Origin: Zygnema circumcarinatum SAG 698-1b
Lineage: Eukaryota > Plantae > Zygnematophyceae
Assembly: GCA_037447605.1 (NCBI GenBank)
Contig: CM074805.1
Coordinates: 2,203,361-2,267,360 of the forward strand
Direction: 5' to 3'
DNA length: 64,000 nt
This document shows positions 40,324 to 55,800 of the stretch, in pieces. How positions within the stretch are numbered: position 1 is the stretch's first letter; the number at the start of each line of letters is the position of its first letter. The translations under genes were made by a program, and so were the position numbers. Under the pieces are notes generated by a model. The model saw only the letters and a list, made by a program, of their open reading frames with translations, was not told the origin of the DNA and did no database searches.

Positions 40324-41305
40324 ATTTCAACTCCCATGGCTTTCAATTGAAATTTGGGAGCCCAGCGAAGCTGACACACATGAATATCGAAAAGATTTAA
40401 ACATGTTCATATGAAAATGGGCCCTAAGATTGACCGCCCCCACCCCGAAATGTAACTTGGAATTAAAAAATAAGTAAAGCTGTGCCACTAAGTAAACAGT
40501 GAAAACAAGAATACCATTCTCAAGTTCCGTGACCCCAGATATCTCCAAGAGCAGCAATTTAATGACAAACTGATTTTAGGATAAATACAACAGAAAAACA
40601 AGAATTAATTGAGACACGCCGTTGTAGGGTGGCATTCAACACTGGGTTTGCCAAATCAGTTGTTTTTCATAATTTACATTGTCACAGAAACAATCGCACT
40701 TTTTGGATTGCTTCCACCTGATCTTACCACTTCTCTCAGCGCGCCAAGTCCTTGGAATTGGCTCCACATACAGTAACATAGATTTTACCATACACATCAT
40801 GGCTAGACATGGCTAGACTACTAACATGGTTAAGGGATGGCTAAGCTAAAAGAAGGCTTCAGTCTTGTCCGTACTATTTTTCTTGACTTACAGCTCGGCA
40901 AGGCATGGCTTTTTTCGACATAACCGGTAACCATATTGCCAAGCCAGCTACGTCACAATCTTGAAGCCATCTTTTAGCCAAGCCATGCTTTTAATATAAT
41001 CTAGGTAAGTAGCCAATGACTGGTTCGACAAAGTTTGACCGCTAATATGGCCTAGATTCCCTGTATAATGCGCAAGGAGCAAAACATTCCCATCCCTGTT
41101 TATCAAGAGGAGGCCGACAAACCATAAATAGAAGCATTCACAGTGAATTTCCTTTAACTTGTTGTCTACGCCTCAATGACAGTACTGTACATCGAACATC
41201 AGCTCTCACCATGCCGTATGTCCTCATCAGCCATCCGTTCCCATGCTGGCGGATGATGCAGACGAGCTGCGAGCACAGAACAGAGCAACACAAGCACAGA
41301 AAGGT

Positions 41306-41443
41306 GGCACACTCCCTCCGCAGGTGTTACCCTGGTCAGGTTCTAAGGGACTCTCTCAGCCTGCCACATACAGCCCCAGCAACATCCTGCCACAGACTGT
41401 GGTCCGGATGTGCTGCGCTGATGCAGCAAGCACCCCTGGTGCC
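41306..41443 (-). ncRNA. TPP riboswitch aptamer in the THIC 3' UTR
   Basis: Minus strand GGCACCAGGGGUGCUUG-[long P3]-CAGGCUGAGAGAGUCCCUUAGAACCUGACCAGGGUAACACCUGCGGAGGGAGUGUGCC. All TPP core motifs present, closely resembling the land-plant THIC aptamer, ~490 nt downstream of the stop. Confidence 0.97.
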
Positions 41444-41930
41444 ATCCATGTCAGTACACAAGAAGAGCAATATGTGGCCGACCATCCCATTCAACTCATC
41501 TGCATAGCAGATGCTCCTCACGTCGCGACGCTTACAAAGATGTTCCAGACACGACCATTTGCTACTCTAGGTGGACTCAACTAAAGAAAGATCCATGCAT
41601 GCTTTTTTACACTTGTGCAGAACAGCTGTTCACTACAAGCTTGAACTGCTATCCACGCCAAGTCTCCCGAAATCGCAGGAAGTCAAGTTTGCTGCATCCG
41701 AGCCATTGAGATGCGGCACCTCCGCTCTCCACCTCCCGATTCTGCAGCGAGGAGGACAACAAGACAAGCTTAACTTCAATGAAATGTAGAGAATGCACAC
41801 ACAATAATTTGTGGAACAGCAAATCGAAACACGCCTCTTTCAAATCCACTTGCAACCATGTTAAAGTAGGAGTAGAGCTCTATCAAAAGTTGGAATTAAA
41901 GAAGCCCCCTTTACCTGACACAGACTGTCT

Positions 41931-48762
<6,832 letters not shown>

Positions 48763-48940
48763 GAAAGTTATCCAGTAGTTGTAGATATTGTGAGATAAGA
48801 GCCGTTCGTTCGTAGTTTGTTGTTTTTGTTTTTGCTTCTGAACTGTGATTTTCATCCGGAGCATGAGGTAGTCCGTTCTTGGCCCATGCTCTATACATTT
48901 CTCCGAGGTTTTTCTTGCAATCACCTGTCCTGACTTGGTT

Positions 48941-49047
48941 GGCACCAGGGGTGCTTGGAACCCGAGCTCGTGTGAGCTGTGGTGCTTCCAGGCTGAGATC
49001 ATACCCTCAAACCTGAACAGGATAATACCTGCGCAAGGGAGTGTGCC
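48941..49047 (+). ncRNA. TPP riboswitch aptamer 1 downstream of THI1
   Basis: GGCACCAGGGGUGCUUGGAA-[P3]-UUCCAGGCUGAGAUCAUACCCUCAAACCUGAACAGGAUAAUACCUGCGCAAGGGAGUGUGCC. Confidence 0.96.
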
Positions 49048-49255
49048 ATGCTGCTTCCTGCTTTCTTTTGCTGTGGTTTCAGGTGGATTGAAGCTTCCCC
49101 GTGGAAAGTCTGAGGAAACTCAGCCATCCATTTAATGAAGTTGCAGGTGGAATTTAGATCTGCCCGGAAATCCCTCTTTACTGTGCCTGCTTCATTGTCT
49201 TTTCCTTCTTTGTGAATCGGGAACATTTCTCGCTTGATGATGAATGGATGTAACG

Positions 49256-49377
49256 TTTGTGGCACTAGGGGTGCTTGTCCTGGCGGGAAGGAGTGAACTT
49301 CTTTCTGTCAGGCCAGGCTGAGATTATACCCTCATCACCTGACCAGGGTAATTCCTGCGATAGGGAAGTGCTACAAA
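49256..49377 (+). ncRNA. TPP riboswitch aptamer 2 downstream of THI1
   Basis: UUUGUGGCACUAGGGGUGCUUG-[15-bp P3 hairpin]-CAGGCUGAGAUUAUACCCUCAUCACCUGACCAGGGUAAUUCCUGCGAUAGGGAAGUGCUACAAA, with an 11-bp P1. Confidence 0.95.
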
Positions 49378-49410
49378 GTGGTTCTAACCTGGGAGTGGAT
49401 GTGCTCAAAA

Positions 49411-49528
49411 GCATCGGCACTAGGGGTGCCTTCTCTGGTGGCAGCCTGTTGGCTAAAATCAGGGAAAGCTGAGATCATACCCTCAATACCTGAACAGGAT
49501 AATGCCTGCGCAGGGAAGATGTCGATGC
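49411..49528 (+). ncRNA. TPP riboswitch aptamer 3 downstream of THI1
   Basis: GCAUCGGCACUAGGGGUGCCUUC-[P3]-GAAAGCUGAGAUCAUACCCUCAAUACCUGAACAGGAUAAUGCCUGCGCAGGGAAGAUGUCGAUGC. Confidence 0.95.
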
Positions 49529-50752
49529 TAGTTTTGTTACAGGATTTTAAGAAAGATATGGCGCCCATATTTTACATGTGTACTTCCAATGTGAGATCTA
49601 TGATTAAACCTGCAAACCTGAGATGTGTGGTGACTTGCTATGAAATCGTCTTGGGGGAAGCCACGCTTGTATACGTACACATGCATTCCTAGTTCGTTTT
49701 GGATGTGTCGATTGAACAAATGACAGAGGATTTGTTAAAATAAGACGTAGGATAATTGGTGGTGAAATTTTTCCCATGGGAAAGCGAAGGTCGGAATGAA
49801 GGTTGGAAAAGTAAAAAAGAACGGATGTGAGAAGAAAGAATGTGAACGAACATTGCAAACATCTGTACCGACTATATTAGACCGGATAACTGCACCAATC
49901 ATAAATAATCTTTGAAAAACATGTGTACGTGTAGAGATTGAACACTTGGTGGTTTGCAAACCCACTACTTAGAACTCGTAAAGCAGCCTCACTTGTTGGT
50001 TGCTTGAGTGAGAGTAACTGTCGACGTTTTTAGATGGGGAAGAGGTTTTTTTGCTCAGTTGCGTTGGAAAGTCTTCTGTAACTTGTACGTCGTTCTTAAC
50101 GTCCCGTTGAAGAAAGTTACTTGTAGGTTTCTTAATACTGAAAACCTCAACGCGTCCTGACCGCTCTGACGTGACCTGAAATCGTTCATAGCTTCTATCT
50201 CTAGTACCGAATCGAACGGAAAATGTAATCACAGCGGGAGTTGAAATTGTAACTGATGACGATCAGATGGTTGTCTTCACTCGTTTCATACTAGAAGTTT
50301 CCTACTCCCTCTCTATCTATTTTCAGGTTATAGAAAGTTTTTTATATGTTATCGTTTGAAACGAATATGATATATATATTGTTGGATTACAGTCGTGAAT
50401 CGTGAGAAAGACAGGTAGCAAATGCATCGCAATTAAATCTTCTATTACTATGGTTTGTTAAGAGAATAATTCTCTAGTAATTAGATTACGTTTACAGACT
50501 TGGAAATGAGGGGGCATGCTGCGTAATTACTCACTACTAGCTGTCTACAGCAACGATACATGATTAGAAGGGTATAAGATGAAATGATTACCGGTCAATT
50601 CACTTCACCGCAGCGTACTTCACCACCGCTATTTTCGGTACAGTTGGAATACAGTCGATCCGGCTCTTTTACGAACCCTGTTATGCCCCCCCTCTGTAGC
50701 TCTGAAATGGTTTCATGGAGAGGTGACACGCAGTTCTAGCTTATGGAGGCTA

Positions 50753-50913
50753 TAGGGTTAAACCCTAAAAACCCTAAACCCTTACACATTTCTGTGCGTA
50801 TCAAAGGAAGGTTAGGCATTCGTCTGTTAGGTGTTTAGACAATTATTAACAGTTGTGATGGCTACAGCAGACTATCTGAAAGGTTAAAGGTTAAAGGTTA
50901 AAGGTTAAAGGTT
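50753..50913. repeat. Telomere-like/telo-box motifs and (AAAGGTT)4
   Basis: TAGGGTTAAACCCTAAAAACCCTAAACCCT at 50753-50782 and AAAGGTT x4 at ~50879-50913. Confidence 0.6.
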
Positions 50914-51942
50914 TTTGTTAGAAGTGCAGTGGTGAATTGAGCGTAGAGGGCATCCCTTGAAAGGAATTTGCTTGGGTAATAAGAGAATGGCGATATTCGG
51001 AATTGTGAAGGTGGGAAAACCTCCCAACCCAGTTCAAGTCTGAGGTCGCCCTGTTGAAAAACTTAGGAACGTGAAGGGTGGGTCACGGATGTGTGGGGGT
51101 GGTCTGCAAGGTTGTTGAGGCCTGCGTAATGTTTCGTTTGGAGGCTATAGACAGGTTTGTGAAGTTGGCATTGTTGCGTTGTGTAAGGGCAATGTGAAAG
51201 TGCAGCGGACGCCTGCTCGATTTGAAGTGAAGTTACGAGTGGAAGTACAGTGTTCAACGCGCTGTAAGTTGATAGCTCTCTAGCGCCCTGCACTCCCCTT
51301 CAACACCACGCGGGTCTCTAAGTCCGTTTGCCACCCGTATTTGCTGAGTTGCTAGTCACGTTTTCGGTCGTCCTGTAACATGCGCGTTGTGCATGCTGAC
51401 TTCCAACTCCAAACTTACATTCTGATTTTGACAAGCTGACCTAGGACACTAAGACACTAACTGCTTGTTTGCATGAAAGTTATCATTTATGCTTGAAGAA
51501 TCTTGCATCGGATATAAGTAATCTAATTGATGGTTGTTTATTCTAGCTAAACCAAGGCGTTCAGTTGACAGGAAGTGTCTAATTTACAGAAATTGTTAAT
51601 AGTCGGTAACTGGTTTAAGTTGCAACTATGAATACCTTTGCTGAGTGCCACTATCCCAAAAGGGATACGCTGCAACAGCAGCAGCCGGACACAACAGCGC
51701 TCTGGCTGCAGGACTTGTTTTGTTTCAGCGCGAATTTTAAATGGAAGGTAACGGATTATTGTAGATTGTGCACGCGAAATGGCGTCGTCCCAAACTGATG
51801 AATCCGAAGGGGCTGGAAGGTCTTGCATACATGGGTTCAATATTGAAAAGCCGTCAGCATTGACAGCGATTTTTTTAGCGTAGAACTAAATATATATCCC
51901 CAGAACTGGTCCAGGTCTAGCGGTTTATGACAGGAGATTGAG

Positions 51943-52882: not shown

Positions 52883-55800
52883 ATGGCTGCCTCAGAAAGT
52901 ATTGCGGATACGCAATGCAGGTCTGTAAAGCGAGCTTGCAACACGTGTGGTACTGCGGTGTTCTCTCCAGGGCGCTTGCGAGGAGCGCAGTTCCTCGTTA
53001 CTCTCTCGTTGCTAGTGAGCATGGGAGAGGGCCATCTGTCTGGCCCTGGCGTGACAATCGACTACGCCCAAGCTCTACGCAAGGCGCTCGTGTTCTTTGA
53101 GGGGCAGCGGTCGGGGAAGCAGCCGGAGGGTGCTGGCTCTGCACCTTTTCGCAATCTGGCTTGGAGAGGGGACTCTGGACTTGAAGATGGCCGAGAGCAA
53201 GGTATAATCCGCCATAGAAAGTCACCTCCGTATGTTGGGAAAGGAGCGTTTTTATCTGAGTTGTCTTAAAATCAGCTTTTGCCTTTTTTCACTCTTGAAT
53301 TCTTTGGATGTCGTTTTCTGAGGTGACTAGCCAAGCAAAGTTTTACCTCCTTTTAAGCGGACGTTTCTGTCGCTCTTTTTTATGAAGATCTCTCCCCTTT
53401 CAGCTCACATCAAGAATGCAAATGTGGCAAGGTTTCTCCGCAGGTGGTTGCTCGTGGGCTCAGTTGCACCCGCAAATGTAAGGTGAAGTCGATATCACTA
53501 ATTGTGAAGTCCTCTTCTTTGTTCCCTTCCTTCGGCAGGTGTTGATCTTGTAGGAGGGTACTATGATGCCGGTGACAATGTCAAGTTTGGGTTTCCCATG
53601 GCCTTTTCCATGACCATGCTTGCATGGTCACTCATTGAATATGGCGATCGAGTTCAGGCAATTGGAGAATTGGAGACTGCCCTCTTTCATCTGAAGTGGG
53701 GCACTGATTACTTGATTAAGGCTCATACGGCACGCACTGAGTTATGGGGTCAGGTGGGCTTTTTCCTTACCTGCAGACGTTCACTCCATAGCTCCTAATA
53801 GACTGCAGGCTAGTTGCTGATCTGCAAACGTTATGTTGCATACTTTAACATCATTAACTGCTCTCTGGACTATTGGGAGCTATGAGATAGGTGAGGCTTT
53901 TTTGGATTGGTCTGTAGATCTAGGCTCAGCAGGGCACGAAGTTCAACCTACAAATCCAAGTTACTTGTTTGGTTGCTTACATACCGTTAGTGGAAGTTCA
54001 GGACAGTCAATTCCTGAAACTCACTAAATTTCTTAATTTTGTGAGCAATCGGCAATGGGCATTATACGAGATTCGGCATCAAACCTTTGAAATTCGTAGA
54101 GAGTCTGCCGTGCATCAGTCCCACCTTGCATGTTGTGCCTGCTTCATCTGTCAGGAAACGGTCCACAGATTCAGCATTTCATCTCGCGCTCTATTGTAGG
54201 TTGGAGATGCGGTTGACGATCATGCTTGCTGGATGCGCCCTGAAACCATGACAACACGTCGCACAGCATACAAGGTGGATGCCGACAATCCTGGATCAGA
54301 CCTCGCGGGTGAGACAGCGGCGGCAATGGCAGCGGCATCTATCGTATTCCGCAAGGATGCACAGTACTCTTCTTTGCTGCGCAAACATGCTGAGGAGTTG
54401 TTCTCATTTGCTACTCAATATCGAGTGAGACTCGCAACCTCTACGGCTGCATTCATAAAGTCGTTCTCATCGAGTTGCTTTGCTGATCTCTTCGATTTCG
54501 AAGCTTAACAAAGGAAGGAGATTACAGTATTCACCAAATCTTAACATTCCTGTTTGAATTGGTCACTGTTTCTGTTGACAATTACGCTTTGTTGCATGCT
54601 CAAACTGGTCTTGGTCTGCGTCAACCATTGCGTACGTGCAATTTTAAATGCATCTGCCCTCTGCTTTTAGTGACTGTATACGCTTTTTAACCTAATGCCA
54701 TCGATGGACAGAAAATTCAGTTTAGTTTTTATAGATTATTAAGGTATAGGGCCGCACATGCAAAATCTCACTGTCATCTGTGGGTACGACTTTGTTAGAG
54801 AGGTTAGTGATGGCAGTTCTAGTTCTTTTACTTATCATGCATTGCTTTATGGGTACAGGGCAATTACAGCGACAACATGTTTGCAGCGGATGGCTTCTAT
54901 ACCTCTTCCAGTGGCTATGGAGATGAGCTTATCTGGGCTGCAACGTGGCTATTCCGCTCAACAGGAGCTCCGCGCTATCTAAAGTTTGCAGCGGGTGACA
55001 AATCGTCACAATGGGGCTTGCAGAAGCAGCTTATGACAGAGTTTTCCTGGGACAATAAGGACTCTGGTGCCCAAATTTTGCTCACAGTGGTATACATCAA
55101 TTTTTGCACTTAGTTGTTAGCGGTACATGCTTGATATCCTGCTTCATCTTGGCCTTCAGAACAGTGTTTCTTGAATTGTGACTCCTTCTAGCGCTTTTCT
55201 CCACATCGTCACAGATCCGTGCTCTTTCTAGAAGCCTACGGAAGCCACATCAGAAGCTGGCACATATTCACTGCATGTTCCCTTGCATGGTGTGGCAACA
55301 GCTAAAACTGCAAAACTCGGCAAGCATGGCCATTTACGATCCAGCATTGACCAAGTACCGTGCTTTGGCGGAGGGGTATGTCTGCGCTCATGTGGAAATG
55401 ACAGTACAACACACCGATGGTGAGGCACTTCTCGTGTTAAAGTGAATTTGTCTCCAGCTGTCTTGTTGCATTACTGGGATAATCGCCTCACTTCACAGAC
55501 GGATAGAATCACTTATGCACTTTAGGATGTAATTGACGTATCTATACCCTGCATTAGGAGAGGAGAAAGCGAGGCTATCATAATTACTGCTGGTTTTCTA
55601 TAGGGGGGGGAAGCAGTCGTCTACATTGAACGTTCAACAGGGTCATTTGCTGGTCGGTGAACTAGATCATGGTCTCTGACTTCTTGCACATAGTTTTTGT
55701 CCATCGCTTGGGCAAATCCATGCAATAGTGGCAAAAAAAGTGAGGCCATTTGACAGATTTTGTCCGGAAATTTGTTTCTGCCAAACCCATTAAAGCAACA

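Follow-up and report, generated by a model that had tools for sequence, protein, structure and literature searches.

The 3'UTR of the thiazole synthase gene THI1 of Zygnema circumcarinatum SAG 698-1b holds three matches to the TPP aptamer model RF00059 within 600 nt, all on a single transcript contig, together with the decayed 3' half of a fourth copy. The explanation that we favour, and to which we give about an even chance, is that these elements form a composite array, consisting of a THIC-type unit, a zygnematophyte pair and a relic with a real 5' splice site, which would act on 3' processing and read-through and not by way of nested introns. The original prediction, made for the same stretch of 64,000 nucleotides (hereafter the window), was a serial splicing cascade, in which the YAG inside each aptamer would function as a 3' splice site, units 1 and 2 would each possess their own donors and TPP would give rise to a series of 3'UTR isoforms.

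THI1 lies on the plus strand and its full product has 359 aa (exons in Table 1). The exons were searched singly; the nearest relatives, 70-78% identical over most of exon 1, were those of bryophytes, Closterium, Mesotaenium and Spirogloea, and for the THI1 product the closest matches had an identity of 75-88%. With the stop codon at 48760-62 and the aptamers beginning at 48937, all three copies are inside the 3'UTR of this gene. Ten ORFs from 3'UTR sequence of the window were looked up by exact sequence in a public protein collection, and no record was found. Transcript evidence was taken from assembled contigs of four public runs belonging to four studies (X1, X2, X3 and X6). Since both GT..AG coding introns are spliced out in their contigs, the four runs represent RNA. 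Contigs of this kind omit rare isoforms and show no transcript ends, strand or local depth.

Upstream of THI1, on the minus strand, lies THIC, recognised by ThiC_Rad_SAM matches on its exons, with a TPP aptamer in its 3'UTR that was used as an internal comparator. Both genes are arranged head to head (window 41250-47300, the first THIC exons being found at ~46200-46700 at the latest), and TPP aptamers end both of them. The THIC aptamer shows the same CTGAC-15 nt-CAG module as aptamer 1, plus a U-rich CAG 3' of the aptamer. The first coding exon of the next plus strand gene downstream (window 53021-53201) matches Glyco_hydro_9 (35 bits), and, judging from a GTAAGT at ~51265 and a strong acceptor-like site at ~52970, this GH9 gene may have an intron in its 5'UTR. 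A short telomere-like AAACCCT run and an (AAGGTT)n microsatellite (50755-50785 and 50880-50915) are located in the 1.6-kb intron/intergenic stretch.

Table 1. Features of the THI1 3'UTR and of the neighbouring genes, in positions of the window
Feature	Position	Strand	Basis or remark
Predicted TPP aptamer of neighbouring THIC	41295..41447	-	RF00059 56.1 bits; CTGAC 41454-41450; CAG 41438-41436; U-rich CAG 3' of aptamer 41269-41267
THI1 exon 1	47298..47912	+	ATG 47298-47300; Pfam Thi4 198 bits; exon end from GT..AG joint in contigs of four runs
THI1 exon 2	48084..48383	+	Pfam Thi4 148 bits; joints 47912/48084 and 48383/48598 in all four runs
THI1 exon 3, coding part	48598..48762	+	Stop TGA 48760-48762; sequence and joint 48383/48598
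Proposed unit 1 donor GAG/GTAGTC	48868..48869	+	Score 5/9; no junction in RNA contigs
Candidate branch-point motif CTGAC, aptamer 1	48930..48934	+	Branch A 15 nt before G of CAG
Predicted TPP aptamer 1 (embryophyte/THIC type)	48937..49058	+	RF00059 53.3 bits, E 2e-9; internal CAG 48946-48948
U-rich tract and CAG 3' of aptamer 1	49065..49082	+	CAG 49080-49082; acceptor-like; proposed donor 49083 is the adjoining GT
Second copy of U-rich CAG element	49131..49151	+	CAG 49144-46; direct repeat D7, spacing 64 nt, 76% identity; followed by proposed donor 49147
GTAAC at conserved branch offset of aptamer 2	49250..49254	+	Alignment; one mismatch to CTRAY
Predicted TPP aptamer 2	49257..49383	+	RF00059 60.5 bits; internal TAG 49266-49268
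CTAAC in spacer of aptamers 2/3	49384..49388	+	35 nt before TAG of aptamer 3; off conserved offset
Predicted TPP aptamer 3	49412..49534	+	RF00059 57.0 bits; TAG 49421-49423; extended P1 49410-19/49520-29 (inverted repeat I4)
U-rich tract and CAG 3' of aptamer 3	49525..49542	+	CAG 49540-49542; element scan of 11 aptamers
Decayed fourth aptamer, 3' half	49577..49639	+	Nearest to aptamer 1; local alignment; repeats D5, D6
3'UTR intron, GT..AG, 1597 nt	49591..51187	+	X6 unitigs; donor AAT/GTGAGA

Aptamers were called with the Rfam covariance model, whose gathering score is 54.3 bits. Aptamers 2 and 3 are above this value and aptamer 1, which has a long P3 insertion, is 1 bit under it. The ligand-binding core, made up of GGGGUGC, CUGAGA and ACCUGA...CCUGCG (P4-P5) and closed by a P1 that can be folded, is present in all three copies, and the minimum-energy fold of aptamer 3 is the aptamer fold with an extended P1. 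As judged from score, core and predicted fold, we regard all three copies as real TPP aptamers. The fourth copy gave an alignment score of 37 against aptamer 1, a value that was reached by none of 500 shuffles (18.9 +/- 3.3).

The THI1 loci of five embryophytes (Riccia, Sphagnum, Selaginella and two further plant contigs) and of Closterium were each scanned with Rfam for comparison. One aptamer was found in each of the five embryophyte loci, and two in tandem in Closterium sp. (L004 7685-7931, GCA_949281275.1; 67.4 and 61.8 bits; spacing ~35 nt), the first of which begins 18 nt 3' of the annotated stop codon. For THI1 of Chara and Ceratodon no aptamer was detected within 5-6 kb. A tree built from 80 core columns placed the two Closterium aptamers with aptamers 2 and 3, apart from aptamer 1, the embryophyte THI1 aptamers and the THIC aptamer, with a moderate support of 87/87. 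This grouping points to two aptamer types within the array, aptamer 1 being the probable counterpart of the land-plant THI1/THIC aptamers and aptamers 2 and 3 belonging to the Closterium type. The arrangement of aptamers 2 and 3 as a pair separated by 28 nt seems to be of old zygnematophyte origin. In the literature searched, nothing relevant was found on tandem eukaryotic TPP aptamers or on riboswitches in Zygnematophyceae.

According to the original prediction, the YAG retained in every copy is a candidate 3' splice site. The three YAGs, read from the sequence, are indeed where they had been placed (Table 1). However, they represent positions 9-11 of the RF00059 consensus 'cacuaGGGGuGC' (Rfam 'cacuaGGGG'), and since the YAG belongs to the TPP aptamer consensus its retention gives no independent information about splicing. 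It was found in 10 of the 11 aptamers compared, the exception being the second Closterium aptamer, which has UGG. Upstream of the proposed AGs, U makes up 0.35, 0.30 and 0.15 of the letters in aptamers 1, 2 and 3, respectively, versus 0.50-0.65 upstream of the three confirmed AGs, and the AG of aptamer 3 is preceded by a purine-rich stretch. Moreover, the Closterium pair, which has no space for an intron 5' of the aptamers and lacks the AG in one of them, argues against a 3' splice site for each aptamer.

The branch-point-like motifs predicted upstream of the YAGs held up better. All three are at the positions claimed, and those of aptamers 1 and 2 have a conserved offset, but the motif of aptamer 3 is off that offset. 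The branch A of a CTRAY precedes the internal CAG by 15 nt in aptamer 1 and in the THIC aptamer of the window; of the five embryophyte THI1 aptamers, four show the same distance, and that of Selaginella has 16 nt. At this offset the alignment gave no CTRAY in aptamer 3 or in either of the Closterium aptamers. For the window as a whole, 8.6% of all AGs have a CTRAY 12-45 nt upstream. The offset shared by aptamers 1 and 2, THIC and embryophyte THI1 is beyond chance, and the alignment indicates that the motifs of aptamers 1 and 2 are real conserved features and that of aptamer 3 is not. The sequence module of a THIC-type switch, in which a candidate branch point closely precedes an AG located 7 nt inside the aptamer, is conserved in aptamer 1, weakened in aptamer 2 and missing as such in aptamer 3.

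Three GTs, at 48868, 49083 and 49147, had been put forward as donors, with short complementarities to the aptamers. The GTs are present, but their fit to the consensus is ordinary: scored against MAG/GTRAGT (maximum 9), they reach 5/9, 7/9 and 6/9, respectively, and a score of at least 6 is attained by 9 of the 58 GTs of the THI1 3'UTR. The complementarities do not rise above chance, being matched or beaten in 191, 70 and 149 of 300 dinucleotide shuffles. In a sliding duplex scan, the segment over 48868 ranked first among 158 for pairing with aptamer 1, with a z of about -2 and a 21-nt internal loop, and the conserved liverwort donor GGTACAT also obtained the first rank in its own UTRs. We regard this modelled pairing rank of donor 48868 as suggestive, no more.

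The GTs at 49083 and 49147, assigned to unit 2, turned out to belong to two copies of a 64-nt repeat that carries a conserved, acceptor-like element, a U-rich tract ending in CAG. This element is present 21-43 nt 3' of 8 of the 11 aptamers, versus a background of 4-8%. Its carriers are the five embryophyte THI1 aptamers, aptamer 1 (at a distance of ~30 nt), aptamer 3 and the THIC aptamer, and it is directly followed by GT in six of these cases and by other pairs of letters in two. In the embryophyte THI1 3'UTRs (L002, L003, L006 from Riccia, L010 from Sphagnum and L011 from Selaginella) it reads (T)GCAG/G, often continued by GTGGA, 21-31 nt 3' of the aptamer. Since these single-aptamer 3'UTRs possess the element without any second aptamer to serve, it should not be taken for a donor for the next aptamer. 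From its letters it looks like a 3' splice site and not like a donor, and it may serve as an alternative acceptor by which the whole aptamer is excised. No description of a U-rich CAG element 3' of a THI1 aptamer was found in the literature examined.

The contigs of the four runs were then inspected for splicing in the 3'UTR. In X1, X2 and X6, one contig extends from the spliced coding region through all three aptamers without splicing, and in X3 a separate contig that starts at 48662, in the last exon, likewise passes through the three of them unspliced. From 48597 on, the contigs reach beyond 50600 in X1 and X3, 50217 in X2 and 49591 in X6. None of the joints that the cascade predicts, ending at 48948, 49268 or 49423, was seen in the contigs of the four RNA studies, and no joint was found at 49082 or 49542 either. 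All three aptamers are kept in the mature mRNA, and no aptamer AG is used strongly enough to appear in the assemblies. Low-level or induced splicing at the AG of 48948 may occur; the spliced form of land plants is unstable and contigs omit rare forms. The X2 contig has adapter letters at both of its bounds, 47261 and 50217, which are likely to be transcript ends and would give a 3'UTR of ~1.45 kb.

Some contigs differ from the window in their flanks. Small contigs of X1, X2 and X3 (280-420 nt, depth 5-39) match only the aptamer cores at 48939-48957 and 49336-49360, and were rejected as spliced forms of THI1, their flanks being unlike the window. Since the flanks are foreign, there must be another aptamer-bearing transcript, and at least one further expressed TPP aptamer, elsewhere in the genome, also with CTGAC directly upstream. 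In X3, the spliced coding contig (window 47279-48691) has a depth of 1734 and the window's own 3'UTR contig one of 94; the letters adjoining the coding part differ on both sides, upstream of 47279 and downstream of 48691, which was not seen in X1, X2 and X6. This difference could be due to a second allele or copy, to another strain or to a construct. None of the six short transcript contigs of P0026 has an aptamer.

A single 3'UTR junction was found, in one of the four runs. The X6 contig forks at 49591, where a unitig of 59 nt with a depth of 66 joins 49590 to letters matching 51189-51208, and a second unitig of 1656 nt with a depth of 22.4 (49562-51217) contains the intron and 30 nt on each side. 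The acceptor is placed at 51187/51188 because the lengths of both unitigs fit. The exon from 51188 extends to the GTAAGT at ~51265 and may be part of the 5' portion of the GH9 gene that follows, whose first exon may overlap the acceptor of THI1 read-through transcripts; the junction may therefore be a read-through form or a chimera and not a regulated step. Its donor occupies the site of the aptamer motif GCUGAGA in the fourth copy, where a C-to-G change has produced the GT. The alignment thus indicates that the donor of this intron arose inside the decayed fourth aptamer. Pairing of the donor at 49591 with any of the aptamers was considered and discarded, the duplex energies being at chance level.

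Under the composite array that we favour, the 3'UTR would sense TPP and act on 3' processing. Aptamer 1 would make a THIC-like choice between 3' end formation and the use of a 3' splice site, its putative splice module being the CTGAC 15 nt before the internal CAG together with the U-rich CAG 3' of the aptamer. Aptamers 2 and 3, of the type shared with Closterium, would take part without a splice module, and the whole array would bias the transcript towards ending or towards read-through and downstream splicing. The only real alternative event seen in the 3'UTR concerns the intron 49591-51187, which is either spliced or retained. The claim that units 1 and 2 are complete switches is upheld in so far as aptamer 1 has the full branch/CAG module and aptamer 2 a weakened one, but not for the unit 2 donors and the pairings. 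Unit 1 as a THIC-like switch, the counterpart of the land-plant switch, is credible but unobserved. In a further-reaching version of the array, an ancestral THIC-type unit, namely aptamer 1, and a zygnematophyte-specific pair, aptamers 2 and 3, would jointly set THI1 read-through and the splicing of the 1.6-kb intron, with a 5' splice site derived from the decayed CUGAGA and a minor TPP-induced use of the AG as a variant; we consider this possible but rather unlikely.

The array could also regulate without any splicing at the aptamers, TPP acting on the choice of poly(A) site, on mRNA stability or on translation, and the three aptamers shaping the dose response as in bacteria. The presence of the aptamers in an abundant mature mRNA, the lack of splice modules in the Closterium pair and the ~1.45 kb 3'UTR suggested by the adapter-bounded X2 contig are consistent with this alternative. 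However, the entire conserved splice module of aptamer 1 is hard to explain without splicing, and no eukaryotic TPP riboswitch is known to work without it (reviews such as PMC10226581), so that we hold this reading to be tentative and rather improbable. Still less probable is that some or all copies are inert debris of tandem duplication that still matches RF00059. One copy has clearly decayed, and the 64-nt repeat in the spacer indicates that the region duplicates and decays; in addition, predicted riboswitches of diatoms are described as unresponsive to thiamine (PMC9544697). Against this stand the CUGAGA, the P4-P5 core and the foldable P1 kept in all three copies, and the Closterium tandem pair of the same type, which argues for long retention under selection. 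The serial cascade is very doubtful: although its AG coincides with the established 3' splice site of THIC-III, which lies 7 nt inside the aptamer (PMC5853225), aptamers 1 and 2 have branch motifs at the conserved offset, the segment over 48868 ranks first of 158 for pairing with aptamer 1 and spliced forms might be short-lived and too scarce for contigs, the cascade is left with consensus letters, pairings no better than those of shuffles, unit 2 'donors' that are parts of an acceptor-like element, an aptamer 3 without a branch motif in place and poor in U before its AG, and no junction in four RNA studies.

The composite array shares features with several known systems. It resembles the Closterium THI1 pair (L004, GCA_949281275.1) in that two aptamers of one type are close together, ~35 nt apart there versus 28 nt for aptamers 2/3; the Closterium locus is without the aptamer 1 type and without CTRAY, its first aptamer is 18 nt from the stop and the second has UGG for YAG. 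Eukaryotic riboswitches are few and, to our knowledge, those described have a single aptamer each. In bacteria, tandem TPP riboswitches exist, and a sharper or wider dose response is expected from them. As in the bacterial tandem riboswitches (Sudarsan 2006, cited in PMC5882874), several full aptamers for one ligand are found in one UTR; unlike them, where each acts through an expression platform of its own by termination or translation, the platform here would be a putative eukaryotic one of RNA processing.

The land-plant THIC TPP riboswitch is described as acting through splicing in the 3'UTR and alternative processing of the 3' end (Wachter 2007, Bocobza 2007, as given in PMC10226581 and PMC5853225). 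The Zygnema array is like it in the 3'UTR location of the aptamer, the AG 7 nt in, the long 3'UTR forms and, for aptamer 1 and the THIC of the window, the branch motif 15 nt upstream. It differs in having three aptamers and a relic instead of one, in that the contigs gave no sign of splicing at the internal AG, in that no donor pairing to P4-P5 rises above chance and in that the sole junction starts 3' of the aptamers. With the THI1 riboswitch of non-seed plants (Bocobza 2007; PMC11521341) it has in common the gene and the location, and aptamer 1, with its CTRAY and U-rich CAG, groups there; the difference is that each of the five embryophyte loci compared has one aptamer. None of the zygnematophyte genera looked for is listed in PMC11521341, and no mention of multiple aptamers was found in the papers searched for it.

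An array of three aptamers in an alga closely related to the land plants would provide a direct test of the origin of the land-plant 3'UTR splicing mechanism, and of whether multiple sensors alter the dose response of a splicing-based switch. It also appears to show the reuse of decayed aptamers, one of which would have become a 5' splice site. The expression platform of the THI1 riboswitches of mosses, liverworts and lycophytes was not found worked out in the literature examined; a branch point at a fixed spacing of 15 nt, together with the U-rich CAG, would refine the model of the THI1 riboswitch in these plants.
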